DNA of 64,000 nucleotides, from the sequence record OP617745.1; one strand, given 5' to 3'. Shown here piece by piece: positions 1 to 48,676 of this stretch (position 1 is its first letter; every line of letters begins with the position of its first letter). The notes beneath the pieces are model-generated. The model was not told the origin of the DNA. It did no database searches and saw only the letters and a program-made list of their open reading frames with translations. A program made the translations under genes and the position numbers.

Positions 1-110
1 ATTATATGTCAGATGGTACACCATATGACGTTACTGTTACAGTACTGAAACCTGAAGTTAATGATCTTGAAGGTTTAAAACAGTGCTACGCATACCAAAC
101 ACGTAGTTAA
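1..110 (+). CDS. 3' end of a gene entering from the left edge (partial, unknown product)
   Basis: Open frame ...YMSDGTPYDVTVTVLKPEVNDLEGLKQCYAYQTRS ends at TAA 108-110 and is followed by a terminator hairpin. Confidence 0.55.
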   Translation, partial: YMSDGTPYDVTVTVLKPEVNDLEGLKQCYAYQTRS

Positions 111-119
111 TATATTAAA

Positions 120-148
120 GGCAGAGATGTACTTCTCTGCCAATTTTT
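120..148 (+). terminator. Rho-independent terminator
   Basis: GGCAGAGA-tgtact-TCTCTGCC then AATTTTT. Confidence 0.7.
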
Positions 149-179
149 AATTCAAAACAAAATAAGGTTTAGTAGATAT

Positions 180-1040
180 ATGAAATTATATTTTTTATTT
201 TCTTTTGCTGAAGATATGTATGGATTTGCAGAAGTTGCAGAAAGTGATGGAATCTCATCACATACCAGGCATCAAAAACACCCACATGAGTTTTATAATA
301 ATTTATTCATGTTTATGCAATATAAAATTTTCTCATCTGAATTTGATAATTTAGATCACCCATGGGAATTACCTTTAATTGATATTCCAGACGAATACGT
401 ATTTCAGTTCATGTTAATGGGTCTGGAAGACTATGACTTAGTTGTTTATAACTACAGAACTAAACGCATTATGCTTGGAACTCACGATAGTTCCATTGTA
501 TATGTTTCAAGTACCAATGATGAGTTAGCGTCTGATGAAGGTAATTATAGAAAATCTTATGGTTATATAGAAAATGATAATGATTTTATTTTAGATTTTC
601 GTGTATCAGAAGAAGAAAGAAGAAAAAGAGAAACTTATCAAGTGGAGTTAAAACCAGATAATGGTTATAATGAAATTTTGGAAGTACTTAAACCATACTA
701 CCTTGATATTGTTTATAAGAAATATAAACGCCTGCTAAATCATCTTAGCGAAAAAGAACCAATTGGTTTTGAAACCAATTCATTACGTAATAGCATCATA
801 TTTCCACCTAGAGTAATGAAATATGGTGAAGTTTCTAAACACAAGATGAAACTATATCCCGATGATATTGAAGTTCTATATCATTCGTGGTTGAATAATG
901 ATGAACTATATGTAGAAAATAAAAAGTTAATGCGTATAAGTAATAATGATGATAGATTGCTACAAGCGTGGTATAATGATTCATATTCTGCATTTACTGA
1001 CAGTAATTCTGAGTATTGGAAGAACACAGGACAAAAATAA
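180..1040 (+). CDS. Hypothetical protein (286 aa)
   Basis: Long ORF between two terminators; no motif recognised. Confidence 0.75.
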   Translation: MKLYFLFSFAEDMYGFAEVAESDGISSHTRHQKHPHEFYNNLFMFMQYKIFSSEFDNLDHPWELPLIDIPDEYVFQFMLMGLEDYDLVVYNYRTKRIMLGTHDSSIVYVSSTNDELASDEGNYRKSYGYIENDNDFILDFRVSEEERRKRETYQVELKPDNGYNEILEVLKPYYLDIVYKKYKRLLNHLSEKEPIGFETNSLRNSIIFPPRVMKYGEVSKHKMKLYPDDIEVLYHSWLNNDELYVENKKLMRISNNDDRLLQAWYNDSYSAFTDSNSEYWKNTGQK

Positions 1041-1043
1041 ACC

Positions 1044-1071
1044 AAGGACGGCGTAAAAACCGTCCTTTTTT
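1044..1071 (+). terminator. Rho-independent terminator
   Basis: AAGGACGG-cgtaaaaa-CCGTCCTT then T-run directly after the stop codon. Confidence 0.8.
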
Positions 1072-1119
1072 AATACATAAATATCTGAACGAAAAATAGA
1101 TTTAAGATATAATGTTTAT

Positions 1120-1740
1120 AATTACAAGGATGTTGGATGCACAGGATGTGCATACACTAAAAACCTGATCCACTCGAAACAAGTAGAGGGCAGATGAGTA
1201 TACCAACAATACGCCGTGTAGAGGATACCCGTTTAGGCGAGTCGACACGTTAAAGGGCAAAGGTAGCACGATTGCCCCAATCTCTCAGGAGATTGATAGG
1301 ACGCGAATCCAGTTAAGTCTGGACATTAAGTGTAAAAGGGAGATTATTTTCTTTTAGATATTTTGGAAATAATCACAGTATTGAATTGCTTGAATAGTTC
1401 GGTACTGAAGTGCAAGTATGTTTAAACTTGTGACCGTTGCATGTGACTGCGATAAGGGGAAACCGGGCAACCCGCCTCTGCCTAAATAAATTGAATTTAT
1501 TAGAATTCGCAATTCAAGGAATTTCGACAGCTACGAGCTTCAAGGCTTAGCTTTTTTATTTCTCTTCCCCTCCCTGTGGGGGGATGAAAATATCTCGTGC
1601 AAACGCCTTCAAGTATTGAAATTCACGAAGTGAATTGAAATTACTTGTTCTGTAGTCGAACGACAGTGAGACGTGAGAACAAGTAATTTCTGCATGTATC
1701 AACGAAGTGCAAACGGAGTTGATACATAGCACTTTAAAAC
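1120..1740 (+). ncRNA. Candidate large structured non-coding RNA or structured cis-element
   Basis: No ORF in the track over ~740 bp; much higher GC than the flanks; many stems (ATGCACA/TGTGCAT, CGTGT/ACACG, GGGCAA/TTGCCC, CAATCTC/GAGATTG, TCCAG/CTGGA, GAAATTACTTGTTCT/AGAACAAGTAATTTC, ATGTATCAAC/GTTGATACAT); TATAAT at ~1108. Confidence 0.55.
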
Positions 1741-1782
1741 ATTATTGAATTCAATAATTAATATTATTATGGTTTTAAAGAA

Positions 1783-2379
1783 ATGAATTTAGAAGAACAG
1801 AAGAAAATCGCTTCAAGAAAACAAAAGAAAGGGATTGATATTAAGTACTACAATACTGATTTTGATTTAGTACTAAATCCAGATACCACATTTAGTGGAT
1901 ATGTAGTAAGAACAGAAAAAAATACATTGTCAAATATTAAAGAATATGAAAATGGAAAAGAGATTGGAATCATTTCATTTAGACCTACACAAACCCCCAC
2001 CATAGATGTTGTTCGTTATAAAAGCTATTATGAAGAACGATACGTAAATGGAAATCTTTCTTTGCAATTCAATATAACATGTGATTCATTATTCGGTGAA
2101 TATATAAAATATGATCAAAATGGTGATATTTTAATGAGATATTACTATAATAATAATGTTAATTGTACTGAAGAAATCATGGATTTTATTGGATTTAATG
2201 GTACAATTGAAGAGTTTAAATATTATACATTTAAAGAAGATGAAGAATTTAATATTTTAATGCGTTATGGGAGTCACTTTAAATTATTAAAAGAACAAGA
2301 AAAAAAACCTCAGTACTTTGACGGTTTATTTGAGAGGTTATATAAAAAAAATAGGGAAATAAATGAGAAAAGGAAGTAA
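1783..2379 (+). CDS. Hypothetical protein (198 aa)
   Basis: ORF with short Y..NG/Y.ENG beta-repeat-like segments; function unknown. Confidence 0.75.
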   Translation: MNLEEQKKIASRKQKKGIDIKYYNTDFDLVLNPDTTFSGYVVRTEKNTLSNIKEYENGKEIGIISFRPTQTPTIDVVRYKSYYEERYVNGNLSLQFNITCDSLFGEYIKYDQNGDILMRYYYNNNVNCTEEIMDFIGFNGTIEEFKYYTFKEDEEFNILMRYGSHFKLLKEQEKKPQYFDGLFERLYKKNREINEKRK

Positions 2380-3007
2380 AAAAAGTGATTTAGTTCACGG
2401 ATTTGGTATAAATGATATACCTAGAGATTCAAAATTAGATAGTGATTATTATAGATGTTATGGTATATGGGTTGGATTTTTGCGTAGATGTTATAGTAAT
2501 AATAGATCTCTAAAGAATATTTCATATACAAATACTGTTGTATGTGACGAGTGGAAATACTATTCAAATTTCAAAATATGGTATTATAATAATTACATAG
2601 AAGGTTATCAAATAGATAAAGATGTAATTGGTGGTACATTAGATATATATTCACCAGAAACGTGTGCTTTCATACCTAACTTGATTAATAGCTGTATTAT
2701 TGATGGTAATAGAAAAGATAAGAGTACGCCAATTGGTGTTTCATTATCTATATATAAAAACAATGTCAAGTACAGAACCTGTATAACAAAATATGGTAAA
2801 CAATTAAAAAATTTCGGTTTATATGATAATCCGTATGATGCACATAAAATTTGGCAAATTGAAAAACGTAATTATCTTTTAGAATTAATTGATAAGTACA
2901 GTAATGATGTGGTACCAGAAGTCATTCAAGGATTACAACGACGAGTTGATATTTTGAATAATGATATTTTAAATGGAATAGAGACAAAAACAATAAGTAA
3001 AGTATAA
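2363..3007 (+). CDS. HNH-family homing endonuclease-like protein
   Basis: Phage HNH-like pattern RRCY...VCDEW..YSNF..W...IDKD...YSPETCAFIP..IN; paralogue of 4062-4739. Confidence 0.75.
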   Translation: MRKGSKKSDLVHGFGINDIPRDSKLDSDYYRCYGIWVGFLRRCYSNNRSLKNISYTNTVVCDEWKYYSNFKIWYYNNYIEGYQIDKDVIGGTLDIYSPETCAFIPNLINSCIIDGNRKDKSTPIGVSLSIYKNNVKYRTCITKYGKQLKNFGLYDNPYDAHKIWQIEKRNYLLELIDKYSNDVVPEVIQGLQRRVDILNNDILNGIETKTISKV

Positions 3008-3020
3008 GGATTATACAATC

Positions 3021-3539
3021 ATGGAAGAAGAAAAGAAAGATAAACATGCCGTACATTTTACAGGTGGTCATGATATATGGACTACTCCACTTGATTTTTT
3101 TAAGAAATTAGATGATGTTTGGCATTTTACATTAGATAGTGCTTGTGTAAAAGAAACTGCGTTATGCTCTAAGTACTATACACCAGAAACTGATGGTTTA
3201 TCTCAGGATTGGGGGAACGAAATTGTATGGTGTAATTGTCCTTACAGTGATATAAAAACTTGGTTATCTAAGTGTGCAGATGCGTATAAAAAAGGTGCTA
3301 CCGTACTGATATTAGTTCCTGCTCGTACCGAGACTATTGCATTTCAAAATTATGCTATGCCAATTGCTGATTGTATTACCTTTATTAAAGGTAGATTAAA
3401 ATTTGGTGATCCTGCTAATCCAGAACGTAAAACAACTAGTGCACCGTTCCCATCATGTCTAATAGTACTGGATAAGAATCTAACACAAGCGAAAATAGAT
3501 TGCCTAAAATCTTTAGGAAACACTATGGTTAACATATGA
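3021..3539 (+). CDS. Phage Dam-type DNA N6-adenine methyltransferase
   Basis: W.TP..FF, FTLD.AC, DGLSQDW, motif IV variant NCPY, LVPART, FIKGRLKF, SAPFPS. Confidence 0.85.
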   Translation: MEEEKKDKHAVHFTGGHDIWTTPLDFFKKLDDVWHFTLDSACVKETALCSKYYTPETDGLSQDWGNEIVWCNCPYSDIKTWLSKCADAYKKGATVLILVPARTETIAFQNYAMPIADCITFIKGRLKFGDPANPERKTTSAPFPSCLIVLDKNLTQAKIDCLKSLGNTMVNI

Positions 3540-4090
3540 ATAAATGTATAATTACTTTTGGTAGAATAAATCCAATTCATTTAGGTCATGGGATTTTATT
3601 CAATAAAGTACAAGATATTAGTACTGAATTAAATGCAGATTTTCGAATTTATCTCAGTACTACACAAGATCCAAAGAAAAATCCACTTCCACCTAATCTA
3701 AAACAATATTACACTTCAAATTTTTATCCAAACATTAAAGATGTATTGAGTACTGAAAGTAATGTAATTAATATTATGCAAGATTTGGATTCTCAGTACA
3801 GTGATATTATTTTTGTTTGTGGATCAGATCGAATAAATTCCTTTAAAAAAGCACTTGACAGTGCCAATGGAAAATTATATAATTTCGATTCAATAGAAGT
3901 AATTCAGGCTGGGATTGAAAGAGAATGTAGCAAATATAGTAGTACTGCAATGCGTTCATATGCACTTGGTGGCGATTATAAATCTTTCAGTACCTTTTTA
4001 CCTGGCAAAGATGTTTATTTAAAAGAACAACTATTTGAAGACGTACAGAGATACATGAGAGATGGGTATAATGGTAGCAAAAGGAAGTAA
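3536..4090 (+). CDS. Cytidylyltransferase-like (HxGH) nucleotidyltransferase
   Basis: TFGRINPIHLGH, VCGSDR, SSTAMR motifs. Confidence 0.8.
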   Translation: MNKCIITFGRINPIHLGHGILFNKVQDISTELNADFRIYLSTTQDPKKNPLPPNLKQYYTSNFYPNIKDVLSTESNVINIMQDLDSQYSDIIFVCGSDRINSFKKALDSANGKLYNFDSIEVIQAGIERECSKYSSTAMRSYALGGDYKSFSTFLPGKDVYLKEQLFEDVQRYMRDGYNGSKRK

Positions 4091-4739
4091 AAAAGGAGAT
4101 CTGGTGTATGGAATAGGTATTAATGACGTATATGGTGATTGTATAAGAACTAGTGAATTTATAATTGTTTATAGTGCATGGAAAGGTATGTTACAAAGAT
4201 GCTATTCTCCTATATGGTTAGAAAAACATCCTAGTTATATTGGGACTAAAGTATGTGATGAATGGAAATATTATTCCAATTACAAGAGTTGGCATTTAAA
4301 CAATTACATTGAAGGATATGAATTGGATAAAGATATTATTGATGGAAAATCTAAAATTTATTCACCATATACATGCTCGTTCGTACCTCCATTAATTAAT
4401 ACATGTATATTGGATGGTGGTAATACTAGCTATTCTTCTCCATATCCACTGGGTGTTTCTTATCATAAGAAAGCGAAACAAATGAAAAATGAACGTTCAC
4501 GCCCATATGAAACTAATATAACTCTTTATGGTAAAAGAAAAAACTTAGGTTCATTTAAAACACCAGAAGAAGCACATAAAGCATGGCAATTTACAAAACG
4601 TGATTATTTATTGGAATTGATTAATAAGTACTGTAATGATGTAGTACCAGAAGTAATTCAAGGGCTTCAACGACGTGTTGATATTCTCAATTATGATATT
4701 AAAAATAGCAGAGAAACCAAATCGCTGAGTAAAGTATAA
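4062..4739 (+). CDS. HNH-family homing endonuclease-like protein
   Basis: QRCYS...VCDEWKYYSNY...LDKD...YSPYTCSFVP..IN; C-terminus near-identical to 2363-3007. Confidence 0.75.
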   Translation: MGIMVAKGSKKGDLVYGIGINDVYGDCIRTSEFIIVYSAWKGMLQRCYSPIWLEKHPSYIGTKVCDEWKYYSNYKSWHLNNYIEGYELDKDIIDGKSKIYSPYTCSFVPPLINTCILDGGNTSYSSPYPLGVSYHKKAKQMKNERSRPYETNITLYGKRKNLGSFKTPEEAHKAWQFTKRDYLLELINKYCNDVVPEVIQGLQRRVDILNYDIKNSRETKSLSKV

Positions 4740-4793
4740 AAATATTAATACATGATTATTTAATGTATTAATATTTTTTTGAGAGGGTATAAA

Positions 4794-5084
4794 ATGGTAT
4801 TATTCAACATAGCAGCATTACATTGGGATAATAATGAAAAAACTGGATTTCGTCAAATCTCTGTTACTTATGAAGGTAAACAAATCATAAGTATTATCTC
4901 TAATAAAACCCTTGGGATATGGGGTTCTCGAATAGTACCTCTTGGATTCAGTTATAATAAAGATGAAGTACAAATGTTAAGTACTTTATATAAGAATATA
5001 GAGTGTATTATGAATTTTCTTGAACAAGATATAGTACTTAATCAGGATGCAGTACTTGACTTTTTGGAAAATATTAATGTATGA
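4794..5084 (+). CDS. Hypothetical protein
   Basis: ORF; ATG at 4794 follows GAGGG. Confidence 0.65.
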   Translation: MVLFNIAALHWDNNEKTGFRQISVTYEGKQIISIISNKTLGIWGSRIVPLGFSYNKDEVQMLSTLYKNIECIMNFLEQDIVLNQDAVLDFLENINV

Positions 5085-5337
5085 TATAACTTGTGTCTTT
5101 CAAGAAGCATGGCTGTCAGGCACTTATGATTTAGAAGTGATCGATGGTATTAAAATGTGGATTATAAAGAGTTCGACGCCTTTTAGTCCAGTAATAAAAA
5201 GTAAATTAAAATATGCAAGTGATGAATATTTAGATTGTACAATAAAAACAAAAAACATTAACTATAATGGAAAAATAATTTTTCTTGGTAATGAACATTT
5301 GTTTTATATTTTTAAAGAGGAATACAATGAATACTAA
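5077..5337 (+). CDS. Hypothetical protein
   Basis: ORF overlapping the previous stop; probable ATG at 5077. Confidence 0.6.
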   Translation: MYDITCVFQEAWLSGTYDLEVIDGIKMWIIKSSTPFSPVIKSKLKYASDEYLDCTIKTKNINYNGKIIFLGNEHLFYIFKEEYNEY

Positions 5338-5932
5338 TAGTAATACTTATTTTCGTTATCTACGTCTGGGTCTATCTCTTCGTCCAGTACGTGGTTATTG
5401 TGATGATCTGGAAGATTTTGAATACGCGTGGGCTGTTCATTGTGAAAATGTACAATACGTACTTAATGATTTTGGTGAATTTGAAAAAGATAATGATTCA
5501 ACTTCAATGATGAATGCGATTGACAATCTTGATTGTATTGCTAATTCAGATCGTCATGAAACAGTACTTGCAGTACAGAAATATATTGAAAGCAATCTGA
5601 GCAAGCCAGTTTGGTGCATGGTAAGCACTGAAGAACAACTTGGAATTACTTTTGGTACTGAAGATGGTTATGTTGCACAATTAATTATGGATTTCAGTAC
5701 TGAAGAAAAATTCATTTCTTATCGTGATAAAATTTATCAAGCACTATTACGCAGTGGTATCAGTGAAGATCAAGTACCAGAAATTGCACCAATGAAAGAT
5801 TTCTTCCTTATCCCAAGTGATGAAAAATATGATGCAATGTTTTATAAAATGAATGTGCCAGGTGTTATTGTTGAACATTTTGACGATGATAATACTGAGT
5901 GGTTGGACTTGGGTGATGACGAAGACTATTGA
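5327..5932 (+). CDS. Hypothetical acidic protein
   Basis: ATG at 5327 after GAGG; highly-expressed-style codons; acidic C-terminus. Confidence 0.75.
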   Translation: MNTNSNTYFRYLRLGLSLRPVRGYCDDLEDFEYAWAVHCENVQYVLNDFGEFEKDNDSTSMMNAIDNLDCIANSDRHETVLAVQKYIESNLSKPVWCMVSTEEQLGITFGTEDGYVAQLIMDFSTEEKFISYRDKIYQALLRSGISEDQVPEIAPMKDFFLIPSDEKYDAMFYKMNVPGVIVEHFDDDNTEWLDLGDDEDY

Positions 5933-6080
5933 TGATTTTTATTGCTTTATAGAAAATACAACTGCACTACTGGAATATTTTGATAATACTCCTTATCATA
6001 AAATAATAGTGCAGGTTTATGATGATCTTTTTTATGAATATGGTAACTATTTTGATTGGTTCGCACATCTTAGTACATAA
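5916..6080 (+). CDS. Small hypothetical protein
   Basis: In-frame ATG at 5916 within track ORF 5853-6080; fills a gap in the operon. Confidence 0.4.
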   Translation: MTKTIDDFYCFIENTTALLEYFDNTPYHKIIVQVYDDLFYEYGNYFDWFAHLST

Positions 6081-6345
6081 CTTTTTATTACTTCTTAATA
6101 ACAAAATACAAATTAACTATATTTTCAGAGATGATCCTTTATATAAAAATGAAATCTCTGATATATACAAGAATATGACAACTGAAATCTATCATTATTA
6201 CATGAATAAAAAATTCAAGTGCTATTATATCAAAGGAATTGTAAAACCAGCAAGGTTATATATATGCACTAAAAATGATATGGTGAGTAAAGTTATAGAT
6301 ATCAAAGATTTAAAAGATGAGGTTCTTAGGGATGAATGGTACTGA
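6019..6345 (+). CDS. Small hypothetical protein, ~90-aa array family (start uncertain)
   Basis: Helical N-terminus then MNKKFK...GIV beta-rich C-terminus ending IDIKDL. Confidence 0.6.
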   Translation: MMIFFMNMVTILIGSHILVHNFLLLLNNKIQINYIFRDDPLYKNEISDIYKNMTTEIYHYYMNKKFKCYYIKGIVKPARLYICTKNDMVSKVIDIKDLKDEVLRDEWY

Positions 6346-6649
6346 ATGTGTGAAAAAGAAAATAGAATTTATACAAATGACGTGTAAGGTAATTTTCGAT
6401 TTAGTACACAATACCAATATACCAACCTTGTTCAAAGAAGAATTATTATTAAGTACTGAGGTTATTTTTGAAGAATATTTCAGTACTAAATTGTATTTAA
6501 ATTATGGTAATTTTTACAAAATTCACGGCTTTACTATAAGTAGTTCAAATGGAAGTGTTTATATTTTAACTTCATTTGGTCATTTCGAATTAACAGAAAG
6601 TACTGTAAAAAATTTTTATGAATATCCATCAAAAATGAGAGTAAATTAA
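6332..6649 (+). CDS. Small hypothetical protein, possible array family
   Basis: ORF overlapping both neighbours; similar helix+beta layout. Confidence 0.6.
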   Translation: MNGTECVKKKIEFIQMTCKVIFDLVHNTNIPTLFKEELLLSTEVIFEEYFSTKLYLNYGNFYKIHGFTISSSNGSVYILTSFGHFELTESTVKNFYEYPSKMRVN

Positions 6650-6849
6650 TGAAAAAATGTTCGTGTTGTGGATCTACTCAAATTGCACGTTTTCGATTAG
6701 ATTCTGATTGGGCCGTTGGTTGTGGTGATTTCTACCCAGTTAATGATGATTCAGAATATACTGAAGAACAACTGAAAGATTTTGATAATAGTTGGAGACC
6801 AGATTTTGAGTTTCTATATTGTTTGAATTGTAATTCGGTACAGGAATGA
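6649..6849 (+). CDS. Small zinc-ribbon-like protein
   Basis: CSCCGS at the N-terminus and CLNC at the C-terminus. Confidence 0.7.
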   Translation: MKKCSCCGSTQIARFRLDSDWAVGCGDFYPVNDDSEYTEEQLKDFDNSWRPDFEFLYCLNCNSVQE

Positions 6850-7115
6850 TTAAACCACATTATCATTGTATTCACTACTTAGGAACGACTATTTGTAATG
6901 AATTTACGAAAAATAAACATCATCAATTCAGTACTGTAATACGTGATATATTGTTATACATTGAAAAAGAATTAACATTATTTTATAAAAATACCGTATA
7001 TACTTATTGTAATAAAAAGTACAAAATACTCAATTTATCATTTGATGATAGAGGATTTTTATATGTAATGAGTACTGAATATTATACTCATTTGGTTCTG
7101 CATACGGATTTATAA
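6846..7115 (+). CDS. Small hypothetical protein, array family
   Basis: ATGA overlap; IRDILLYIEKELTLFY resembles IRSILDNIEDELNVLY of the next ORF. Confidence 0.65.
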   Translation: MIKPHYHCIHYLGTTICNEFTKNKHHQFSTVIRDILLYIEKELTLFYKNTVYTYCNKKYKILNLSFDDRGFLYVMSTEYYTHLVLHTDL

Positions 7116-7384
7116 TGAACAAACAATTATTATACTGTAAAGTGGTTTATTACTTGACTAATTCAGTACTGAATATGAATAACACACATTTTAACTATTC
7201 ACTCTGTATTAGAAGTATTCTAGATAACATAGAAGATGAACTAAATGTGTTATATACTGGAAAAACATTCACAAAAAACAATATCCGACACAAATGTAAT
7301 GGTATTGTTATAACATATGGTCGTATATTTGCTTTATACGGTATACGTTACACTTGCTATTTTCATAGGGCCAAATTTAAATGA
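7115..7384 (+). CDS. Small hypothetical protein, array family
   Basis: TAATG overlap; similar to the previous ORF. Confidence 0.65.
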   Translation: MNKQLLYCKVVYYLTNSVLNMNNTHFNYSLCIRSILDNIEDELNVLYTGKTFTKNNIRHKCNGIVITYGRIFALYGIRYTCYFHRAKFK

Positions 7385-7998
7385 AAACAGATTATTCAAA
7401 ACTAAGAACAAAACTTTATGGAATTATAGAGGGACTATCTCTAATCGATCCAAAGTACTATGAATTACGTCGTTTACTTGCATTCGCCGAACAATATCAT
7501 TGTAATACACGCAAAGATGGTTCTGAAGAATTCTCTCATCAATTACAAATGCTTGGATTGGCTCTTACGCTTCATGAATCGATGTGTAAGCCGTTTGAAG
7601 TATACATGGCAATTGTATCTCATGATTTAATCGAAGACTATCCAGAAGCTTCTGAAACGCTTGAGATGTTATTCCCTGATGTAATCCAATATAGTCGCAA
7701 ACTGGCTAAATTTAAAGATTCAAATACTGATGAAGATTCGTACTATGGATACTTTAATCAGCTTGCTAATTGTCAAGTATGTTCAATTGTAAAACTCGTA
7801 GATAGAGTGCACAATTTGAGTACCGCACCTGGTGTATTCAGTACTGAAAAAATTATAAGTTATTGTGATGAAACTGATAAGTATTTCTTTGATATGATAA
7901 AAAAATCCAAAGTTATGTTCAATCAACGTTCAGCTTATGAAGTTCTAAAATTCATGTTGAATACTGAAGTCAGTACTATCAGGAATTTATTAAAATGA
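7381..7998 (+). CDS. HD-domain hydrolase of the RelA/SpoT hydrolase (small alarmone hydrolase/Mesh1-like) type
   Basis: AEQYH...RKDGS..F.H, HDLIEDY, VKLVDRVHNL motifs. Confidence 0.8.
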   Translation: MKTDYSKLRTKLYGIIEGLSLIDPKYYELRRLLAFAEQYHCNTRKDGSEEFSHQLQMLGLALTLHESMCKPFEVYMAIVSHDLIEDYPEASETLEMLFPDVIQYSRKLAKFKDSNTDEDSYYGYFNQLANCQVCSIVKLVDRVHNLSTAPGVFSTEKIISYCDETDKYFFDMIKKSKVMFNQRSAYEVLKFMLNTEVSTIRNLLK

Positions 7999-8201
7999 AA
8001 ATAGTTTTAGAATTTGCATTTATTATTTTTGGTTTCATTTGGTTCACTGCTATTTCAATTTTTGCTGGATATCTCATTATTAAACCGGATATGTTGATTT
8101 TCTACTGGATTTTGACTTTAATTGCATTCATCAGTGTTGTCTATTTGTCTTATAAACTGGTATATCTATATGCAGATGAAATCAAAAAATATAACACTTA
8201 G
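7995..8201 (+). CDS. Small membrane protein (two TM helices)
   Basis: Two long hydrophobic stretches. Confidence 0.65.
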   Translation: MKIVLEFAFIIFGFIWFTAISIFAGYLIIKPDMLIFYWILTLIAFISVVYLSYKLVYLYADEIKKYNT

Positions 8202-8234
8202 TTGGTTTTATGTTGAAAAGATTTAAAATCGATA

Positions 8235-8264
8235 TTGAATAAACATTTCTCCTTGTGATATAAT
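8235..8264 (+). promoter_or_regulatory. Sigma70-like promoter
   Basis: TTGAAT-N18-TATAAT with an extended -10 TG. Confidence 0.55.
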
Positions 8265-8308
8265 ACTATATGTAAAAGGATTTTACATAAGCACAAGGAG
8301 AGTCAAAG

Positions 8309-9037
8309 ATGATAGATAATTTAGCATTTGCATCCGAAATGGCTAATCAGTTGAACATGAGTAATTTTCAGAGTCTTACACCAGTGATGGCGGAATATGC
8401 TGTTGCTCATGCCACCTGTGGTGAACAAGTTGGATCAGCAAATTTATTAGCTGATGTATTCAGTACTGTACAAAGTACCCAATACAGTGTTAAAATGTAT
8501 AGGGATAAGTTTGTACAGTTGTATATGCTTGATGTAATAAAAGAAGAACCAGAATGGACTGATTTTATTATTGAACGTAGGATTAGTGGTGTTTCTAATC
8601 CAGATAAAGATGCAGTACAAGTATTTGATGAAATACTTCAAGATGTATATAGTAATGAACAAAAAAGTCTAAATCAATACAATGTACGTTCTACCAAGAC
8701 AGTGCTCGTGGGATTTGATGAAGATGAAGAATATTACTATTTTCGTTGTACTGAAGTAGATTTTAAATACGAAACTCCCAGTACAGTTAAAGTTAAAGAA
8801 TTTACTGAAAAGAGTAAAAACTTCAAAAAACATTCTTCTAATATTAGTAATATAGTTGGTTATAATAAAGATGGTATTGACATATATCAATGGGTACACC
8901 CAAATAACTCAACTTATACCAGATGTTTAAAGAAACGTTATAATTTAAAACAAGAAGAATCATTTTATTTTAAGATAAAGAAGCATTCCTATCAACGACC
9001 TGATGAATCAGTGTTACTTGGTATGATTTACTTCTGA
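8309..9037 (+). CDS. Hypothetical protein (242 aa)
   Basis: AAGGAG RBS, own promoter and terminator. Confidence 0.8.
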   Translation: MIDNLAFASEMANQLNMSNFQSLTPVMAEYAVAHATCGEQVGSANLLADVFSTVQSTQYSVKMYRDKFVQLYMLDVIKEEPEWTDFIIERRISGVSNPDKDAVQVFDEILQDVYSNEQKSLNQYNVRSTKTVLVGFDEDEEYYYFRCTEVDFKYETPSTVKVKEFTEKSKNFKKHSSNISNIVGYNKDGIDIYQWVHPNNSTYTRCLKKRYNLKQEESFYFKIKKHSYQRPDESVLLGMIYF

Positions 9038-9045
9038 TTTTAGTC

Positions 9046-9079
9046 GTCCAGTACAATATAAGTACTGGACATTTTTTTT
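9046..9079 (+). terminator. Rho-independent terminator
   Basis: GTCCAGTAC-aatataa-GTACTGGAC then T8. Confidence 0.8.
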
Positions 9080-9090
9080 AAGGTAAAAAA

Positions 9091-9369
9091 TTGAATATAT
9101 TACAAAAAGTCAATTTATTTGGAAAAGCGTATGTAAATGCTTTTTATGATATTGATAAACGTTATGAATATGCTAATTTTTTAAATAGAGAAATTGAATT
9201 TAGTAGAATGAATAGGTTATTGTCTGGTAAACGAGTAACTATTATTTTTAATGGTTATCAGGGATATATTAATCAAATTCGCCATCTAGATAAGAAAATT
9301 TTTGCATTCGTTTATACTAATAATGGAAATTTATTGGTTAATGTATCTTTTTTGGAATTGATTGAATGA
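9091..9369 (+). CDS. Small hypothetical protein, array family
   Basis: Helix + LLSGKRV...GYINQI...VNVSFLELIE. Confidence 0.65.
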   Translation: MNILQKVNLFGKAYVNAFYDIDKRYEYANFLNREIEFSRMNRLLSGKRVTIIFNGYQGYINQIRHLDKKIFAFVYTNNGNLLVNVSFLELIE

Positions 9370-9650
9370 AATTAATAGACCAAGTTATTCTTTATAAGAA
9401 AGTATTTGATTATATGGAAGATTTTCTTGATGGTACACATTATGAATGTTGCATTTATGTTACATGGAAAAAGAATGTAATGGAAATAGAAAAAGCTACT
9501 ATTTCTAAAATAGTTCGAGTAAAAAGCCTTGATATTATCGGTACTATCATTGAACTTAATATAGGAAGATATTTTGCATTTTTTGGTGTAAAAGTACCTG
9601 AAAACGATTTTGCTCTTATAATTTCATTAGATGATATTGAGTTTCTTTGA
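9366..9650 (+). CDS. Small hypothetical protein, array family
   Basis: Helix + KIVRV...GTIIEL...ISLDDIEFL. Confidence 0.7.
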   Translation: MKLIDQVILYKKVFDYMEDFLDGTHYECCIYVTWKKNVMEIEKATISKIVRVKSLDIIGTIIELNIGRYFAFFGVKVPENDFALIISLDDIEFL

Positions 9651-9679
9651 GTTTTATCTATTTGGTAATATAAAATATT

Positions 9680-9991
9680 ATGGATAAATTACACAAAGCA
9701 GTATTATTTTTAAAAGCATATAGCTATGAGTACTTACAAAGTCATGGAAAATGGAATGGTAGTTATAATGATTTGTATTCATCTGTTTTTCTTAATGAAG
9801 TAAATCTTGTGATATCAGAAGTACAAAAATTATATGAAAGAAAACTTGTGCATACGAGATTTGGTATTGGAATTATTATTAGTATATTTTGCTTCACACA
9901 CGGTTCCTTTTCAGTTACAATCAAAATAATAGTAGAAGGCAAACCACAAACAATAGTATTAAAATTAAGTGAGATATATCTGGATGAATGA
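9680..9991 (+). CDS. Small hypothetical protein, array family
   Basis: Helix + LYERKLV...GIIISI...LKLSEIYLDE. Confidence 0.7.
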   Translation: MDKLHKAVLFLKAYSYEYLQSHGKWNGSYNDLYSSVFLNEVNLVISEVQKLYERKLVHTRFGIGIIISIFCFTHGSFSVTIKIIVEGKPQTIVLKLSEIYLDE

Positions 9992-10256
9992 ACATTTTAA
10001 TAGAATACAATTAATCACCCAACTTCTACAAATGGTTGATGACACATTTGATGAATTAAAAAATAATCTTATGAATAAGAAAATCAAATGTAAGGTATAT
10101 ATGAATGATGGTGATTATTTCGATATGCGTGAAGTTGAAGTAACTGGAATTGTTACTAATATTACTTTGTATGAATATGATCTAACTATTACAGTGAAAA
10201 TCGACGAAGGTCGTGAATATTACGTTTGTAATCAACATATTGAGGTGGTTGAATGA
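9984..10256 (+). CDS. Small hypothetical protein, array family
   Basis: Helix + LMNKKI...GIVTNI...HIEVVE. Confidence 0.7.
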   Translation: MNEHFNRIQLITQLLQMVDDTFDELKNNLMNKKIKCKVYMNDGDYFDMREVEVTGIVTNITLYEYDLTITVKIDEGREYYVCNQHIEVVE

Positions 10257-16814: not shown

Positions 16815-16820
16815 TAAACA

Positions 16821-16850
16821 AAAGAAGCCCAAATAAGGGCTTCTTTTTAT
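16821..16850 (+). terminator. Rho-independent terminator
   Basis: AAAGAAGCCC-aaataa-GGGCTTCTTT then T-run. Confidence 0.85.
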
Positions 16851-16876
16851 TTAAGTAAAATATATTAAGGATTAAT

Positions 16877-23137: not shown

Positions 23138-23166
23138 GAGAGTACTATAGTACTCTCTAATTTTTA
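23138..23166. repeat. Perfect 20-bp palindrome containing two AGTACT sites (possible terminator)
   Basis: GAGAGTACTATAGTACTCTC at 23138-23157, followed by a T-run. Confidence 0.75.
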
Positions 23167-32229: not shown

Positions 32230-33702
32230 ATGAAAAACGTAAATCCAAATGTAAACTTTATTTTAAACTGCGACAGCTATAAGATTCAACATAGAAAAAT
32301 GCTCAAAAAGCATGTTGATGGTTATTACAGTACTATTGTACCTCGTAAAAGCTCTCCACATAGCAACCATGTAGTTGTGGCTGGTTTACAATACACAATT
32401 AATACCTATATCAATATTCAGATTACCAAAGAAGATGTTGATGAAGCTGAAATTGAAATTCGTGAACAAGGTTCACGTTTTGACCGCACTATTTGGGACA
32501 AAATCGTCAATGAGTTTGGTGGTAAAGTTCCAGTAAAAATTAGTGCTATTAAAGAAGGTACAGTTGTTCCAGTTCAATCAGTAGTTTGTGTTGTTGAAGC
32601 TAAAGATGAGTTTGCATTTTTGGCTAGTTATATTGAAACTTGTATTCAACGTGGTGTATGGTATAGCAGTACTGTAGCATCTGAATGTCGTGCAATGAAA
32701 AAAATTCTTGCTGATGTAATGCAACGTCATGCTGGTCATAAGAATGTAGATTATCATTTCCACAACTTTGGAGATCGTAGTGCAACTTGTTTTGAACATG
32801 CATATGTAGCTGGTATGGCACATGCAATTATGTTCAATGGTTCGGATAGTTTAACTTCCAATCGTTATATTAAAGCTCACTATAATACTACCAAAGCGTA
32901 TCTGAGTTCAGTTGACGCTACTGAACATAGCGTTATGTGCAGTAATAGTGATGCTGAACATCGCAATGATTATGGTGCAGCAGTAATGGCGGTAGATCAT
33001 TGGGAAGAACAAGTTACAATGTGGGAAGAAGATGGATTAGGTGTACCAGTAACTTCATGTGTTATTGATACTTATAATGATTATCGCTTTGTCCGTGACT
33101 TTATCGGTACTAAATTAAAAGACCGTATTGTTGAAATTGGCAAACGAGGTGGTCGCTTTGTTCTTCGTCCTGATTCACGAATTCCTAAAGAAATTTGTAT
33201 TGATGTAATCGAAATTCTTATGGAAAAGTTTGGTTATACTATTAACGAACATGGCTACAAAGTACTACCACCATATATTGGAGTAATTCAAGGTGATGGT
33301 GTTAATTTCGATAGTATTCATGAAATTCTAGATATTCTTGATGAAAAGAAATTATCCCTTGAAAACATTGTATTTGGTTGTGGTACCAAATTGGTTAACC
33401 CTGAACGTGGTCGTGATCTTTATAGTTGGTCAATGAAAGGTACTGCACAACACATCGAAGATGAACGTGAATGGCAAGACCTATTCAAAGATCCAGCAGG
33501 TGAACCAGGCAAACGTTCACATAAAGGGCGTGTAGTAACCTGGAAATGTAAAGTATCTGGTAAGATTTTTGTTGATCGTGATGATCTTGATAAAGTTAAT
33601 CATTTCATTGAAAATCTACTTGTACCAATGTATGACTGCGGTAAAATTATGAATTTCAGTACTTTTGATGAAGTTCGTGAGCGTGCTAACGTAGGTATCT
33701 AA
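32230..33702 (+). CDS. nadV: Nicotinamide phosphoribosyltransferase (NAMPT/NadV)
   Basis: DSYK..H, HNFGDR, TEHSV, VIDTY, RPDS, IQGDGV, KDP...KRS.KG. Confidence 0.92.
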   Translation: MKNVNPNVNFILNCDSYKIQHRKMLKKHVDGYYSTIVPRKSSPHSNHVVVAGLQYTINTYINIQITKEDVDEAEIEIREQGSRFDRTIWDKIVNEFGGKVPVKISAIKEGTVVPVQSVVCVVEAKDEFAFLASYIETCIQRGVWYSSTVASECRAMKKILADVMQRHAGHKNVDYHFHNFGDRSATCFEHAYVAGMAHAIMFNGSDSLTSNRYIKAHYNTTKAYLSSVDATEHSVMCSNSDAEHRNDYGAAVMAVDHWEEQVTMWEEDGLGVPVTSCVIDTYNDYRFVRDFIGTKLKDRIVEIGKRGGRFVLRPDSRIPKEICIDVIEILMEKFGYTINEHGYKVLPPYIGVIQGDGVNFDSIHEILDILDEKKLSLENIVFGCGTKLVNPERGRDLYSWSMKGTAQHIEDEREWQDLFKDPAGEPGKRSHKGRVVTWKCKVSGKIFVDRDDLDKVNHFIENLLVPMYDCGKIMNFSTFDEVRERANVGI

Positions 33703-34288: not shown

Positions 34289-35026
34289 ATGATTAGTACT
34301 AAATTCATTAAAAAAGCTGGTGATAAAAGATTACTAATCATTTCTGGAAATGGATTGTCAATGGATAGTGGTTTTGATTTATATGATATTCCTGATAATT
34401 TTCAGATAAATGATGTATGTAATATTGCCAGTTTAGGTACAAAATATCACGTAGTACATTCTTATTATAATACTCTTAGAGTTAAATTAAAAGATATTGA
34501 ACCAAACGAAATGCATTACTATATTAAATCATTACAAGATGAGTATGGTGATAACTTTTTACACATGACCAGTAATGTAGATGATTTATATACAAGAATT
34601 GGTGGCACTGAATTAAAATTACATGGTAATATTAAAGAGGTTATAGAAAACTACACCGCTGATGGTTCTGAAATAGAAATAAAAGAATTAGGTTATGAAC
34701 CATATATTCCATGTAGTGGTATTTTTTCTAAACCCGGTGTTACATTAATTGGTGAGTTCCATAGTTATTTTTATGGATATAAAACCCCAATTTATGAAGA
34801 ACGAAATGAAATACTAAAATCATTAAATGAAAATGATACTGTAGTAGTAATTGGAAGTTCTGATTCAGTACTGAAATGGAGCCATTTAATAAATGAGAAA
34901 TGTTACACAGTACTAATCAATATAAGAAAAAATGAAAACGATCATCGTTTCAATGAACGAATTTATAAATCTTGTTCCAAATCTGTATTAGATTTATCTG
35001 GAATAATTTCAAAAAGGATGGTATAG
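34289..35026 (+). CDS. Sir2/sirtuin-family protein (divergent)
   Basis: IISGNGLSMDSG (GAGxS variant), EPN..H, TSNVDDL, catalytic LHG, KPGV, VIGSS. Confidence 0.8.
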   Translation: MISTKFIKKAGDKRLLIISGNGLSMDSGFDLYDIPDNFQINDVCNIASLGTKYHVVHSYYNTLRVKLKDIEPNEMHYYIKSLQDEYGDNFLHMTSNVDDLYTRIGGTELKLHGNIKEVIENYTADGSEIEIKELGYEPYIPCSGIFSKPGVTLIGEFHSYFYGYKTPIYEERNEILKSLNENDTVVVIGSSDSVLKWSHLINEKCYTVLINIRKNENDHRFNERIYKSCSKSVLDLSGIISKRMV

Positions 35027-35580: not shown

Positions 35581-35912
35581 TAATGGGATACCAGTTATTT
35601 TTAGATGATATTCGTGACCCATCAAAATATTATAGTACTGAAATGGTACTATGTAGATCTTATGATGAAGCTGTCAAATATGTAGAAGAACATGGAATTC
35701 CAGAATTTATCAGTTTTGACCATGACCTTGGAGATACTTCTGATAATGAAAAAACTGGTTATTCATTTGCTAAATTTTTGATTGATTATATGATTGATAA
35801 TGGTATCAGTACTGAATTCAAATATAATATTCATAGCTCAAATCCAGTAGGTGCAGATAATATCGATTCTTATCTAAAAGCTGGTTTTAAATATCTAAGA
35901 GAAAATATGTAA
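35577..35912 (+). CDS. Cyclic-phosphate-processing receiver-like domain protein
   Basis: LFLDDIRDP, RSYDEA, ISFDHDLG, KTGY, HSSNPVG. Confidence 0.7.
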   Translation: MIMGYQLFLDDIRDPSKYYSTEMVLCRSYDEAVKYVEEHGIPEFISFDHDLGDTSDNEKTGYSFAKFLIDYMIDNGISTEFKYNIHSSNPVGADNIDSYLKAGFKYLRENM

Positions 35913-36243: not shown

Positions 36244-37182
36244 ATGGCAGCAAAAAGAATTAAACATCCTACACAGAAATATTTAAAGGAATGTTTTGAT
36301 TATGATTCCAGTACTGGTAATTTGATTTGGAAAAACAGACCATTATCACATTTTGAAAATGAATGTGCTCAAAATATAACAAATTCAATGATGTGTGGAA
36401 AAGTTGCTGGTTCAAAAGACAAACATCCAAAAAGTGATACATTATATTATGTAATAATTAAAGTTAATAATAAAGATTATTATGCTCATTGTTTAATTTG
36501 GATTTGGTTACATGGTGAGTTACCAGATGATGAAGTTATTGATCATGATGATGGTGATGGTACCAATAATAGAGAAATAAATCTTATTAAGAGAGGTTTC
36601 AATGATAATGTAAGAAAAGGTAAAATGAGAAATGACAATATATCTGGATTTCGTGGAGTTTCTTATATTGAAAAAAGAAATAAATGGAAATCGGCAATAT
36701 CGATCAATAATATAAAAATACAGTTGGGATATTTTGATGATGTTATAATTGCAGCTAGATATTATGCGACTGCTTTTCTTATTCATTCAGGTGAAAAATA
36801 TAAATTCAACTCATCATCTGTTATAGAATATAATAATTCTGAACCTGAATATATTAAAATTAAATCTATATTACATAATAAATTGAATAACATTAAAACA
36901 ATTCGTCCTGATAATACGTCTGGTATTACAGGTGTTTATTTTTTAAAACGTGATAATAAATGGATTGCTAAATCTTTACATGATGGAAAATACATACCAC
37001 ATATCACAACAGCCGATAAAAACTTAGCTATACGTTATATTATAACTGCTGATGTTATTTTTGGTAAAAGAGATATAAATGATGAACAAGAATGCTTCAA
37101 TATAAATTCAAAGGAGTATAAAGAAATAAAGAATAAAATTAATGAATATATTAGTAAATTTCAGTTAAAATCTTTGATCTAA
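36244..37182 (+). CDS. HNH homing endonuclease with AP2-like DNA-binding domains
   Basis: YDSSTGNLIWK, AHCLIWIWLHG...IDHDDGDGTNNR.INL, two N.SG..GV repeats. Confidence 0.85.
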   Translation: MAAKRIKHPTQKYLKECFDYDSSTGNLIWKNRPLSHFENECAQNITNSMMCGKVAGSKDKHPKSDTLYYVIIKVNNKDYYAHCLIWIWLHGELPDDEVIDHDDGDGTNNREINLIKRGFNDNVRKGKMRNDNISGFRGVSYIEKRNKWKSAISINNIKIQLGYFDDVIIAARYYATAFLIHSGEKYKFNSSSVIEYNNSEPEYIKIKSILHNKLNNIKTIRPDNTSGITGVYFLKRDNKWIAKSLHDGKYIPHITTADKNLAIRYIITADVIFGKRDINDEQECFNINSKEYKEIKNKINEYISKFQLKSLI

Positions 37183-38688: not shown

Positions 38689-38752
38689 TTAACACTCAGT
38701 ACTGATATTTGTTCAAAAAGTTTTCAGTACTGAAAAATAAAATAAAAATCAC

Positions 38753-42842: not shown

Positions 42843-42852
42843 ACCTTTTTAG

Positions 42853-46388: not shown

Positions 46389-46407
46389 AATGGTTAAATA
46401 ACATAAA

Positions 46408-47373
46408 ATGGATATTGTGGTATTTAATATGAAAATTAATAAAATATTAGAAAGTTTTAACAAAAAACATAATGGGAAATATACTTATAATTTTATAAAT
46501 GATAAAGATTATAAAAATAGTGATTATATAGAGATTATATGCGATGAACATGGAAAATTTGTACAACGAATTGAATTTCACAAAGAAGGCACTGGATGCC
46601 CTTCATGTGCAATTAATATAAATGCAAAAAGAAAAGTTGAAAAAGCAAAAAGTGTTTTTGAACATAAAGCCAATATAAAACATGATAACAAATATGATTA
46701 TTCAAAAGTTGAATATATTAATGCTAAAACAAATGTTATTATTATATGCAATGAACACGGAGAATTTGAAATAACACCTAATAAACATTTGAACGGTAGA
46801 GGTTGCCAAAAATGTGGAATAATTAGACGAAATGGAGTAAGGCGAAAGCCAATATCTCAATTTATCAATGAATCTAATATTATACATAATGATAGATATT
46901 ATTATAATCTTGTTGAATATACTAATACTGATAATAAAGTATGTATTATTTGTTCTGAACATGGTGAATTTTGGCAATCACCAAATCATCATATTCAAGG
47001 AAATGGTTGCCCATCTTGTAACAAATCTGGATTTAACCATTCAAGAGATAGTTATTTTTATGTTCAACAAATAGAACATGATAATAAAATAATTTCTTAT
47101 AAATTTGGTATAACCAATACAAATATAAAATCCCGTTTATATAGACAGAATCATTTATCAATTTATACGGTTACTAATATTTTTAATTTTAAATTGTTAG
47201 GTTATGAAGCATTAAAGATTGAAAATATAATAAAAGAAAAATTAGAAACTTCATTTTTATCTAAAAATGTTTTTAAAGATGGTTATACTGAAACCATAAA
47301 TCCAAAAGATATTGATAAATTAGAAAATTTAATAATAGAGTATATAACAAATGAATTATCAAACAATAATTAA
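46408..47373 (+). CDS. Homing endonuclease-like protein: C.EHGEF Zn repeats plus GIY-YIG-like C-terminus
   Basis: YDYSKVEY...ICNEHGEF repeats; YFYV...YKFGITN...SRL.RQN...KDGYTET; lies between nrdD and nrdG. Confidence 0.75.
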   Translation: MDIVVFNMKINKILESFNKKHNGKYTYNFINDKDYKNSDYIEIICDEHGKFVQRIEFHKEGTGCPSCAININAKRKVEKAKSVFEHKANIKHDNKYDYSKVEYINAKTNVIIICNEHGEFEITPNKHLNGRGCQKCGIIRRNGVRRKPISQFINESNIIHNDRYYYNLVEYTNTDNKVCIICSEHGEFWQSPNHHIQGNGCPSCNKSGFNHSRDSYFYVQQIEHDNKIISYKFGITNTNIKSRLYRQNHLSIYTVTNIFNFKLLGYEALKIENIIKEKLETSFLSKNVFKDGYTETINPKDIDKLENLIIEYITNELSNNN

Positions 47374-47809
47374 AGATGACTTAATAAATGGGGAGGGAGT
47401 TAGATGCTCCCTTTTTGTTTCGGGTTGTTCAATGGGTTGTAAAAATTGCTACAATGAAAAAGCATGGGATTATAGAAGCGGTACTGAATTCGGTACTGAA
47501 CAAGTTGAACTTATACTAAACGAATTATCTAAATCATATATATCAGGATTATCATTACTTGGTGGTGATCCACTTGCTCCAAAAAATTGTAGTACTGTAA
47601 TCGAACTATGTAAAGTTGTTAAAGAAAAATACCCAGACAAAACCATTTGGTGTTGGTCTGGGTATACATTAGAAGAGATACAAAACAATCATGCAAAAGA
47701 AATATTGCAGTACTGTGATGTATTGGTTGATGGTAAATTCATAAATGAATTAAAAGATTTATCATTACCATATAGGGGATCATCAAATCAAAGAATAATA
47801 AAATTTTAA
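47351..47809 (+). CDS. nrdG: Anaerobic RNR activating enzyme (radical SAM)
   Basis: NGEGVRCSLFVSGC...C..C, GLSLLGGDPL, WCWSGY, RGSSNQR. Confidence 0.95.
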   Translation: MNYQTIIKDDLINGEGVRCSLFVSGCSMGCKNCYNEKAWDYRSGTEFGTEQVELILNELSKSYISGLSLLGGDPLAPKNCSTVIELCKVVKEKYPDKTIWCWSGYTLEEIQNNHAKEILQYCDVLVDGKFINELKDLSLPYRGSSNQRIIKF

Positions 47810-47842
47810 TTATAAATTATTTTCTATATTATAGAACAATTT

Positions 47843-48676
47843 TCAAAACATTATCATTTTCTTAATCTCTCCATATAGAACCAGATGGCAATCTAGTTGG
47901 ACATGCTCACATGGTTCTTGAATAAAGTGTGTAAACGTTCTTCTAAGCGAGCCAGTAAAACTACTAAAATCAGCTTTTACCTGACTGGATATTCGGTAGT
48001 ACCCTGGGGGTATTAATAGTGTCGCTGAAGAATATCGGGTGTTACTTCCCAATTCAAACGTAACGTATGGACCTATCGCATCGAACGCTGCTTGAAACGC
48101 CGGAGACCAATCCCACGTGTTTGGATCTCCTGCGTCCGGTTTGTCAGTAATAAGATCTCTGAACTCCCAGACAGAGACTTTTATTGAACTTAATGCTGTA
48201 GCAACGGAATTGGCTGTAGATATAGCCGCAGCTAATGGGTTACGCTTTGAATTAACCATATAGCTTCCCAGACCATCTTCTGATGAAGCCAGATCTGCAA
48301 TTTTAACTCTATCTTGTAATGCTTGCTCTACCGTAACTCCTTGAGATGTACCAATTAGAGACGCACCATATCCAATTTGATTACTTTGTAACACAGATTT
48401 TGATAACAATAGCCCTTGAGTTAACGAAAATGTCCCAATACTTGTGACTAAAGTTAAAGTCTCTCCTGAAACACTCCAAGATATAGTTGTACCAGTAGCT
48501 GTTCCGCGATACCAACATGTTTCAGTACTTTCATCATATAAAACAATATATGGATTTATAAGTACTGAAGTAGATAGATATCCTACCGAAGATTTTTCAA
48601 TACCAAAGATTCTAGCTATAGATTCCTTATTAGTTTCTTTTGATACTGAGCCTTTTGGCTGAGTTAATTTATTCAT
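47843..48676 (-). pseudogene. Truncated tailspike/tail fibre (N-terminal adaptor intact, catalytic domain missing)
   Basis: Same N-terminus as 51889-54048; stops about 45 aa after the IPPGYYRI beta-helix entry with an unrelated-looking tail. Confidence 0.6.

Follow-up and report, generated by a model that had tools for sequence, protein, structure and literature searches.

The palindromic hexamer AGTACT is over-represented by an order of magnitude in a 64,000-nt stretch of phage DNA, positions 186001-250000 of sequence record OP617745.1 (hereafter the window), and the same excess recurs in related jumbo phages. Judged by its sequence the whole window is phage DNA; over bases 18000-40000 it is a 100% match to Klebsiella phage KP13-7 (RaK2-like; genus Alcyoneusvirus, 357,701 bp). 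As a reading that we favor tentatively, without going so far as to call it probable, we propose that the RaK2-like jumbo phages possess in AGTACT a highly iterated palindrome specific to their lineage, a selected self-mark word for a putative phage factor.

The window contains 157 copies of AGTACT compared with 14.78 ± 3.98 expected from dinucleotide-preserving shuffles, none of 100 of which attained that number (maximum 28), and the extended form CAGTACTG occurs 42 times where 0.63 ± 0.8 copies are expected. Twenty-nine sites fall within positions 1-10000 and 138 within 1-48000 (2.9 per kb), beyond which the density drops to 1.2 per kb in 48-64 kb. A first-pass annotation of this DNA had tallied about 28 copies in the first 10 kb and had claimed an approximately 10-fold excess, a high density extending to about 48 kb, frequent extension of the site, and occurrence both in coding sequence and between genes, and our counts bear out each of these statements. 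Within 1-48000, where the G+C content (GC) is 28-31% (31.5% for the window), AGTACT ranks first among 6-mers by z-score and is the sole enriched palindrome. The runner-up among palindromes with more than five copies has an observed-to-expected ratio of 1.26 and the others are neutral or avoided, so a general enrichment of palindromes, which the annotation had named as an outcome that would speak against its proposal, does not exist in this DNA. Nor is GTAC the true unit; outside AGTACT this tetramer is at expectation (208 vs ~203), which identifies the hexamer as the unit.

By the deposited gene calls, 141 sites reside in coding sequence and 16 are intergenic, the latter compared with 1.5 expected from intergenic composition (~10-fold). 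When synonymous codons were shuffled gene by gene, coding sequence yielded only 46.6 ± 5.8 sites (maximum 65 in 500 shuffles) vs the 141 observed, even though this null is a conservative one that retains the protein sequence and codon usage themselves shaped by the motif; loss of the excess under such shuffling, also raised by the annotation, thus did not occur, and a codon or dipeptide artefact can be set aside. All three reading frames contribute, with 83 sites vs 32.6 in the shuffles for AGT-ACT, 14 vs 2.6 for xAG-TAC-Txx, and 44 vs 11.4 for xxA-GTA-CTx. At the protein level, Ser-Thr is the top over-represented dipeptide (176 vs 99), Val-Leu and Gln-Tyr are raised as well, and AGTACT encodes 47% of the Ser-Thr pairs as opposed to 15% expected. 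An excess that resists shuffling, extends to all frames and is accompanied by a dipeptide bias points to a pressure on the DNA that is strong enough to skew protein sequence. A cause at the level of RNA or translation, such as a codon-pair or dipeptide preference or transcript hairpins forming between palindrome copies, could draw on the preponderance of the AGT-ACT frame (83 of the 141 coding sites) and on three intergenic sites situated within hairpin stems or palindromes. We nevertheless consider it extremely unlikely and, as the main cause, refuted: the excess outlasts the synonymous shuffle in every frame and is highest between genes, the flanks of the word are mirror-symmetric despite the placement of nearly all genes on one strand, and terminator-like structures hold only 3 of the 16 intergenic sites. 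With so few intergenic sites in hairpins and 141 sites inside genes, AGTACT also does not qualify as a promoter or terminator element.

The flanks are symmetric. Directly 5' of the core, at position -1, C is found at 3.2 times and G at 0.2 times background, this preference is mirrored at +1, and the two flanks vary roughly independently of each other in a weak outer context that is T-rich on the 5' side and A-rich on the 3' side. The resulting weighted symmetric consensus is TT-C-AGTACT-G-AA, in which G is strongly disfavored immediately 5' of the core; a looser 12-bp consensus, TTCAGTACTGAA, has six exact copies in the window. Mirror symmetry of both core and flanks argues for recognition of duplex DNA by a symmetric factor. 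One-mismatch variants of the hexamer are raised at the outer positions only (NGTACT, 70 vs 30 expected), with inner variants at ~1.0 times expectation. Spacing between sites is near Poisson (coefficient of variation 0.92), and neither regular spacing nor clustering was seen in the window.

Every relative checked carries the excess. RaK2 has 141 copies vs 10.9 expected in the homologous region, 114 vs 10.8 at 100-150 kb, and 125 in the 50 kb at 150-200 kb, and the excess extends to Escherichia phage slurp01 (Asteriusvirus; 140 vs 12.6), Serratia phage BF (Eneladusvirus; 132 vs 10.7), and Cronobacter phage GAP32 (Mimasvirus; 114 in 50 kb). It is also found, at 6.5-14 times expectation, in 18 of 18 IMG/VR relatives identified through their DNA ligase, and is strongest in the Xanthomonas jumbo phage XaC1 (159 vs 15). 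Pooled over 300 kb of clade DNA, AGTACT occurs 809 times vs 70.5 expected (~11-fold); at ~3 per kb, or ~1 per 350 bases, a clade genome of ~350 kb carries ~1,000 copies. Elsewhere the picture is different. T4 is close to expectation (12 vs 9), E. coli K-12 has 11 copies in 50 kb (0.22 per kb vs 2.9 in the phage), and in several phages that are unrelated or only distantly related to the clade AGTACT ranks with the palindromes avoided most: PA5oct, a phage of Pseudomonas (3 and 1 copies in two 50-kb regions vs ~14.6 each, or 4 vs 29), XacN1 (0 in 40 kb), ICP1 (4 vs 13.7), and Lactococcus phage Phi109 (0 vs 10). Hosts of the clade include Klebsiella, E. coli, Cronobacter, Serratia, Erwinia, and Xanthomonas, and the excess in XaC1, whose host is not enteric, assigns the trait to the phage lineage and not to an enterobacterial host. 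This constancy across hosts further argues that the factor, or alternatively a repair bias, would be phage-encoded. The flanks have drifted within the clade, with BF and XaC1 favoring A or C at -1 and XaC1 alone tolerating G; such drift is as expected of a co-evolving DNA-reading factor, and phylogenetic inertia explains it equally.

The distribution and the flanks also bear on whether phages use or titrate a site of some host protein. The sequence bound by the enterobacterial nucleoid-occlusion protein SlmA, GTGAGTACTCAC, has AGTACT as its core, and binding depends on G1 and T2 together with a purine at position 3 (PMC3020112). Besides sharing this core, the clade has mostly Enterobacterales as hosts, the Pseudomonas phage PA5oct is devoid of the excess, and the enteric phages, unlike XaC1, show a depletion of G at -1. 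Within the window, however, GT.AGTACT.AC has no match and GAGTACTC a single copy, C is preferred where SlmA requires the purine, T4 on E. coli has no excess, and XaC1 has the full excess on Xanthomonas. To our knowledge, Xanthomonas lacks SlmA. Thus, the phage sites neither have the flanks that SlmA demands nor are confined to SlmA-bearing hosts, and we regard SlmA or another enteric host factor as largely refuted and its probability as minimal.

Comparisons between relatives establish that density is preserved while individual sites come and go. KP13-7 and RaK2, which are ~5-7% divergent, have 110 sites in common, with a further 19 present in KP13-7 only and 17 in RaK2 only; AGTACT is conserved in 85.8% of cases vs 79.4% for the average 6-mer (p 0.04), and synonymous third positions within AGT-ACT have changed in 5 of 120 cases, whereas these codons show 55 changes in 516 cases when located outside the motif (p 0.016). 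Slurp01 is far more distant, with 56% amino-acid identity and 47% identical third positions over 21.9 kb of aligned codons, yet the two phages have 69 and 70 sites in the aligned sequence, an equal density, of which only 19 of 69 are co-positioned. Density has therefore remained constant while most sites were replaced. Positional sharing with slurp01 (27.5%) is still 2.6 times that over all 6-mers (10.5%; p 6e-5), and of the 34 sites that encode Ser-Thr in KP13-7, 26 correspond to a different residue pair in slurp01. Sites already present enjoy moderate protection, and amino-acid change is a route by which further ones arise.

Within the phage, site density differs between classes of genes. 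Genes conserved in two other genera have 3.45 sites per kb, those conserved in one other genus 2.70, and those without an ortholog in the two compared loci 2.57, while the lowest densities belong to the homing-endonuclease-like genes and the tail block (Table 1). Within the latter, a receptor-binding/depolymerase module is shared with phages KP13-2, -16, -26, and -27, which were isolated on the same strain, KP13, and on its nucleotide identity to unrelated phages this module is a recent host-range exchange. In the gene at 58157-60832 the sites are confined to the N-terminal portion. AGTACT is accordingly in excess in resident DNA but scarce in imported DNA, a trait that it shares with Chi and uptake-type words. 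The annotation had stated that the motif marks native phage DNA; this stands insofar as density is lowest in the homing-endonuclease-like genes and the tail block, but the split between native and imported DNA lies within the phage. The boundary at ~48 kb is a module boundary in the phage genome and not a phage-host junction.

The excess of AGTACT opposes this lineage's own extreme avoidance of such sites. Six words are entirely absent from the 300 kb of clade DNA: GCGC (113 expected), CTCCTC/GAGGAG on both strands (37), GCATGC (SphI, 27), CAGCTG (PvuII, 23), CTGCAG (PstI, 23), and TCCGGA (19). These zero counts look like very strong restriction-site avoidance. GCGC is also absent from the window (22.6 ± 4.4 expected), all 18 IMG/VR relatives and XaC1, but is found 47, 44, and 357 times per 50 kb in PA5oct, T4, and E. 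coli, respectively; the GCGC gap is thus co-distributed with the AGTACT excess. Several side observations pertain to word usage in these genomes. GGATCC has one copy in the window. GAC-containing words (GACA, AGAC, AGTC, GTCA) are depleted ~2-fold in all three genera, and TAAATA/TATTTA is depleted in the window (66 vs 173) and similarly in slurp01 and BF, as would be expected if spurious late promoters of the T4 type (TATAAATA) were avoided. Genes for GTP cyclohydrolase I and QueD (18449-19724 of the PA5oct locus) in PA5oct, which has neither the AGTACT excess nor the GCGC gap, suggest 7-deazaguanine DNA modification, an anti-restriction strategy other than site avoidance.

One candidate for a protein reading AGTACT is the Dam-family methyltransferase encoded at 3021 (Table 1), to which the annotation had linked the word. 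AGTACT could be the target of this or of another phage modification enzyme, with dense modification protecting or marking the DNA. The Dam-like gene occupies the same place throughout the enriched clade, XaC1 included; a genome that purges palindromes should, by inference, need its ~1,000 ScaI-type sites shielded; and RaK2 DNA is reportedly cut by methylation-insensitive enzymes only (PMC3622015; data not shown there). Over its full length, however, the enzyme is 49% identical (E 3e-46) to M.Phi93DAM, which makes G6mATC as determined by single-molecule real-time (SMRT) sequencing and DpnI/DpnII digestion (PMC4190342). Specificity is uncertain at 49% identity, but on this homology the recognition sequence would be neither AGTACT nor a sub-word of it; the enzyme is probably GATC-specific and hence not the AGTACT-reading factor. 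Its nearest homolog outside the clade is encoded by Phi109, in whose genome AGTACT is absent, so that on both counts the proposed link with the 3021 enzyme is not supported. A weaker point is that the KP13-7 and RaK2 alleles differ while motif and flanks are the same, as these genomes diverged recently. The enzyme has no relative in the PDB.

The other modification enzymes of RaK2 fare no better. ORF194, a C5 methyltransferase (16708-17601 of the RaK2 locus), shows full-length similarity to the catalytic domain of animal DNMT3A/3B (E 2e-22), far exceeding that to bacterial M.HhaI or M.HaeIII, and this kinship agrees with a mention of CpG methylation in RaK2 (PMC3622015); AGTACT has no CpG, which argues against a DNMT3-like enzyme. 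The Mom-family protein of RaK2 likewise does not fit, as it is missing from most Asteriusvirus genomes and thus not clade-wide, and its ICP1 homolog resides in an AGTACT-depleted genome. Taken with the findings for the Dam-like enzyme, we deem it quite improbable that AGTACT is the target of a phage modification enzyme. Another conserved open reading frame (ORF), 1783-2379, located directly upstream of the Dam gene in other genera, was considered as a nuclease or DNA-binding partner and rejected; its AlphaFold2 model, composed of beta-hairpin repeats plus helices, has no PDB match at E <= 0.001.

The reading that we tentatively favor, a self mark, would operate as follows. A force acting on double-stranded DNA, not on proteins, would keep AGTACT at ~3 per kb, with fresh sites appearing in every reading frame as well as in intergenic DNA, even where this alters an amino acid, and with established ones disappearing more slowly than other 6-mers do. 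With ongoing gain and slower loss, long-resident DNA would come to carry the mark and recent imports would not. AGTACT would then be the recognition site of a putative phage-encoded, symmetric (dimeric) DNA-binding or DNA-modifying factor that acts genome-wide on phage DNA. Selection would bear on overall density and not on particular positions, in line with site turnover, Poisson spacing, and the tolerance of 3.7-kb gaps, which together indicate that density, not any given site, is maintained. The excess itself, its action at the level of DNA, its distribution over the clade, the turnover of sites, and their scarcity in imported DNA are observed; it is the existence of a protein reading AGTACT, its phage origin, and its role that we infer from these sequence patterns.

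Several points weigh against this proposal. Poisson-like spacing and gaps of 3.7 kb reveal no local requirement for the word. Pfam and PHROGs scans of 36 ORFs in the window disclosed no DNA-binding candidate, the model of the protein encoded next to the Dam gene shows neither a nuclease fold nor one for DNA binding, and all three known modification enzymes of RaK2 (Dam-like, C5, and Mom) misfit AGTACT. Finally, biased repair would leave the same static pattern as selection, and sequence alone cannot tell the two apart.

Under biased repair or gene conversion, a form of molecular drive, heteroduplexes would be fixed toward AGTACT and a functionless word would accumulate with residence time. High turnover at a constant density across genera, the creation of sites at the expense of amino-acid changes, a gradual gain in resident DNA with low counts in imported DNA, Poisson spacing, and the restriction of raised one-mismatch variants to the outer positions, which resembles HIP1 (highly iterated palindrome 1) of cyanobacteria, all accord with such a process. 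Biased repair has in fact been proposed as the source of HIP1, and a methyltransferase matching the inner HIP1 sequence is present in cyanobacteria. In the phage, however, no near-cognate source word is depleted among the one-mismatch neighbors of AGTACT, as a very-short-patch-like process would require, and the deamination product AGTATT is at expectation (39 vs 38). Additionally, in the ~210 kb of annotation read, corresponding to ~60% of a clade genome, there is no Vsr- or MutH-like gene and no methyltransferase matching AGTACT, and intergenic density is only 1.4 times that of coding sequence, where an unconstrained drive might give more. On balance, we consider drive a serious but rather unlikely explanation, and provisionally rank the self mark first.

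Highly iterated palindromes are known already from cyanobacteria, as are over-represented self-identifying words, Chi and the uptake signal sequences and DNA uptake sequences (USS/DUS), from other bacteria, but our literature search returned no report of such a word in any phage, nor of AGTACT in this clade. HIP1 is a short palindrome that is distributed lineage-wide in all frames and in intergenic DNA, whose sites turn over and are scarce in imported DNA, and whose one-base variants lie preferentially at the outer positions, as Elhai reportedly noted in 2015. AGTACT resembles HIP1 (GCGATCGC) and the alternate cyanobacterial iterated palindromes in each of these respects: an order-of-magnitude, genome-wide excess amounting to ~1 site per 0.3-1 kb across the lineage, presence in all coding frames and in noncoding DNA that codon use does not explain, abundance kept while sites turn over, outer-position variants, and scarcity in imported DNA. 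It differs in being carried by a virus instead of cells, in being an AT-rich 6-mer core with weighted flanks where HIP1 is a GC-rich 8-mer, in the misfit of all three phage modification enzymes, and in residing in a genome that otherwise purges palindromes. Chi and USS/DUS, which are density-dependent self signals for a dedicated machine, share with AGTACT a genome-wide excess, an occurrence inside genes with effects on proteins, and a depletion in foreign DNA. These words are, however, asymmetric, with Chi being strand-oriented, while AGTACT and its flanks are mirror-symmetric; AGTACT is 3-15 times as dense as Chi, and no cognate helicase-nuclease or uptake receptor is linked to it. The SlmA-binding sequence of E. 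coli shares the 6-bp core, the palindromic 12-bp layout, and the dispersed chromosomal placement, but differs by the C instead of a purine at position 3, the missing G1, and the extension of the phage excess to a Xanthomonas phage. AGTACT is also the ScaI site, enriched 11-fold in the clade but avoided in PA5oct, XacN1, ICP1, and Phi109; no ScaI-like endonuclease or methyltransferase was identified.

A more specific form of the proposal would make AGTACT a palindromic, Chi-like self signal, such that a phage factor spares or handles AGTACT-dense DNA and the DNA of the host is either degraded or disregarded, with the absence of GCGC forming the other half of the system, for example through a phage nuclease that cuts GCGC. 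Host DNA does differ from phage DNA on both counts, with 13-fold fewer AGTACT per kb and ~7 GCGC per kb vs none. We consider this scenario improbable.

The features discussed are compiled in Table 1. The first 47.8 kb hold ~83 small to medium genes, almost throughout on the + strand, with products that include RNA ligase, polynucleotide kinase, DNA ligase, ClpP, dCMP (deoxycytidylate) deaminase, a NAD (nicotinamide adenine dinucleotide)-salvage pair, Sir2, PhoH, and NrdD/G; large tail-fiber/depolymerase genes of raised GC occupy 47.8-64 kb. Members of the NAD-related cluster are an NMN (nicotinamide mononucleotide) adenylyltransferase/Nudix protein, a nicotinamide phosphoribosyltransferase, a Sir2-like protein, and a small cREC_REC (cyclic-phosphate processing receiver) protein, and the cluster is likely a counter to NAD-depleting defenses. 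Domains of the homing-endonuclease-like ORFs comprise HNH fragments, CapR, DUF723, and HNH_3+AP2; several of these ORFs are not at the same places in RaK2, and two paralogous HNH C-terminal fragments flank a Dam-cytidylyltransferase pair. The Dam-like allele of KP13-7 is only 69% identical to that of RaK2, although the neighboring DNA is ~93-97% identical; phages Muenster and phiKp_21 carry this very allele, whose catalytic motif is NCPY in place of NPPY.

Table 1. Features of the window (positions 1-64000 correspond to record positions 186001-250000)
Feature	Position	Strand	Remarks
High-density AGTACT stretch, early/metabolic genes	1-47809 (record 186001-233809)		138 sites, 2.9 per kb; 38 are CAGTACTG
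Conserved ORF, directly upstream of Dam gene in other genera	1783-2379	+	Synteny; AlphaFold2 predicted local distance difference test (pLDDT) score 76
Six homing-endonuclease-like ORFs	2363-3007, 4071-4739, 21414-22784 (+), 24443-25378, 30728-32152, 36244-37182		1.17 sites per kb together
Dam-family (PF05869) N6-adenine methyltransferase	3021-3539	+	Pfam E 4e-28; same place across clade including XaC1
Terminator-like hairpin followed by T run	9046-9079	+	Arms GTCCAGTAC and GTACTGGAC; 3' arm overlaps AGTACT at 9061-9066; fold -15.4 kcal/mol
Perfect 20-bp intergenic palindrome GAGAGTACTATAGTACTCTC	23138-23157		Two AGTACT copies; holds the only GAGTACTC of the window
NAD-related cluster	29610-30674, 32230-33702, 34289-35026, 35583-35912
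Two TCAGTACTGA copies, 28 bp apart	38696-38733		Gap after PhoH-like gene, upstream of TTGACA-containing stretch
Tail-fiber/depolymerase block	47843-63903		GC 36%; 19 sites in 15.3 kb (1.24 per kb)
Receptor-binding/depolymerase module	51323-53955	-	89-92% nucleotide identity to unrelated Klebsiella phages (49-144 kb); GC 42-44%; zero AGTACT
Gene with sites in N-terminal portion	58157-60832		6 sites in first 900 nt, 0 in remaining 1775 nt

Phages are the textbook avoiders of palindromes, and here a whole clade keeps ~1,000 copies of one palindrome per genome at the price of biasing its proteins. The clade consists of jumbo phages of therapeutic relevance, for which the AGTACT excess predicts an unusual ScaI fingerprint, and in which site density tells resident DNA from recent acquisitions, among them the depolymerase modules on which host range depends. 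If a DNA-reading protein exists, AGTACT would represent a new viral genome-wide self mark and the protein a new sequence-specific DNA-binding or DNA-modifying activity; if instead biased repair is the true cause, the word would be the first viral counterpart of the HIP1 problem, one in which drive would be testable by mixed infections.

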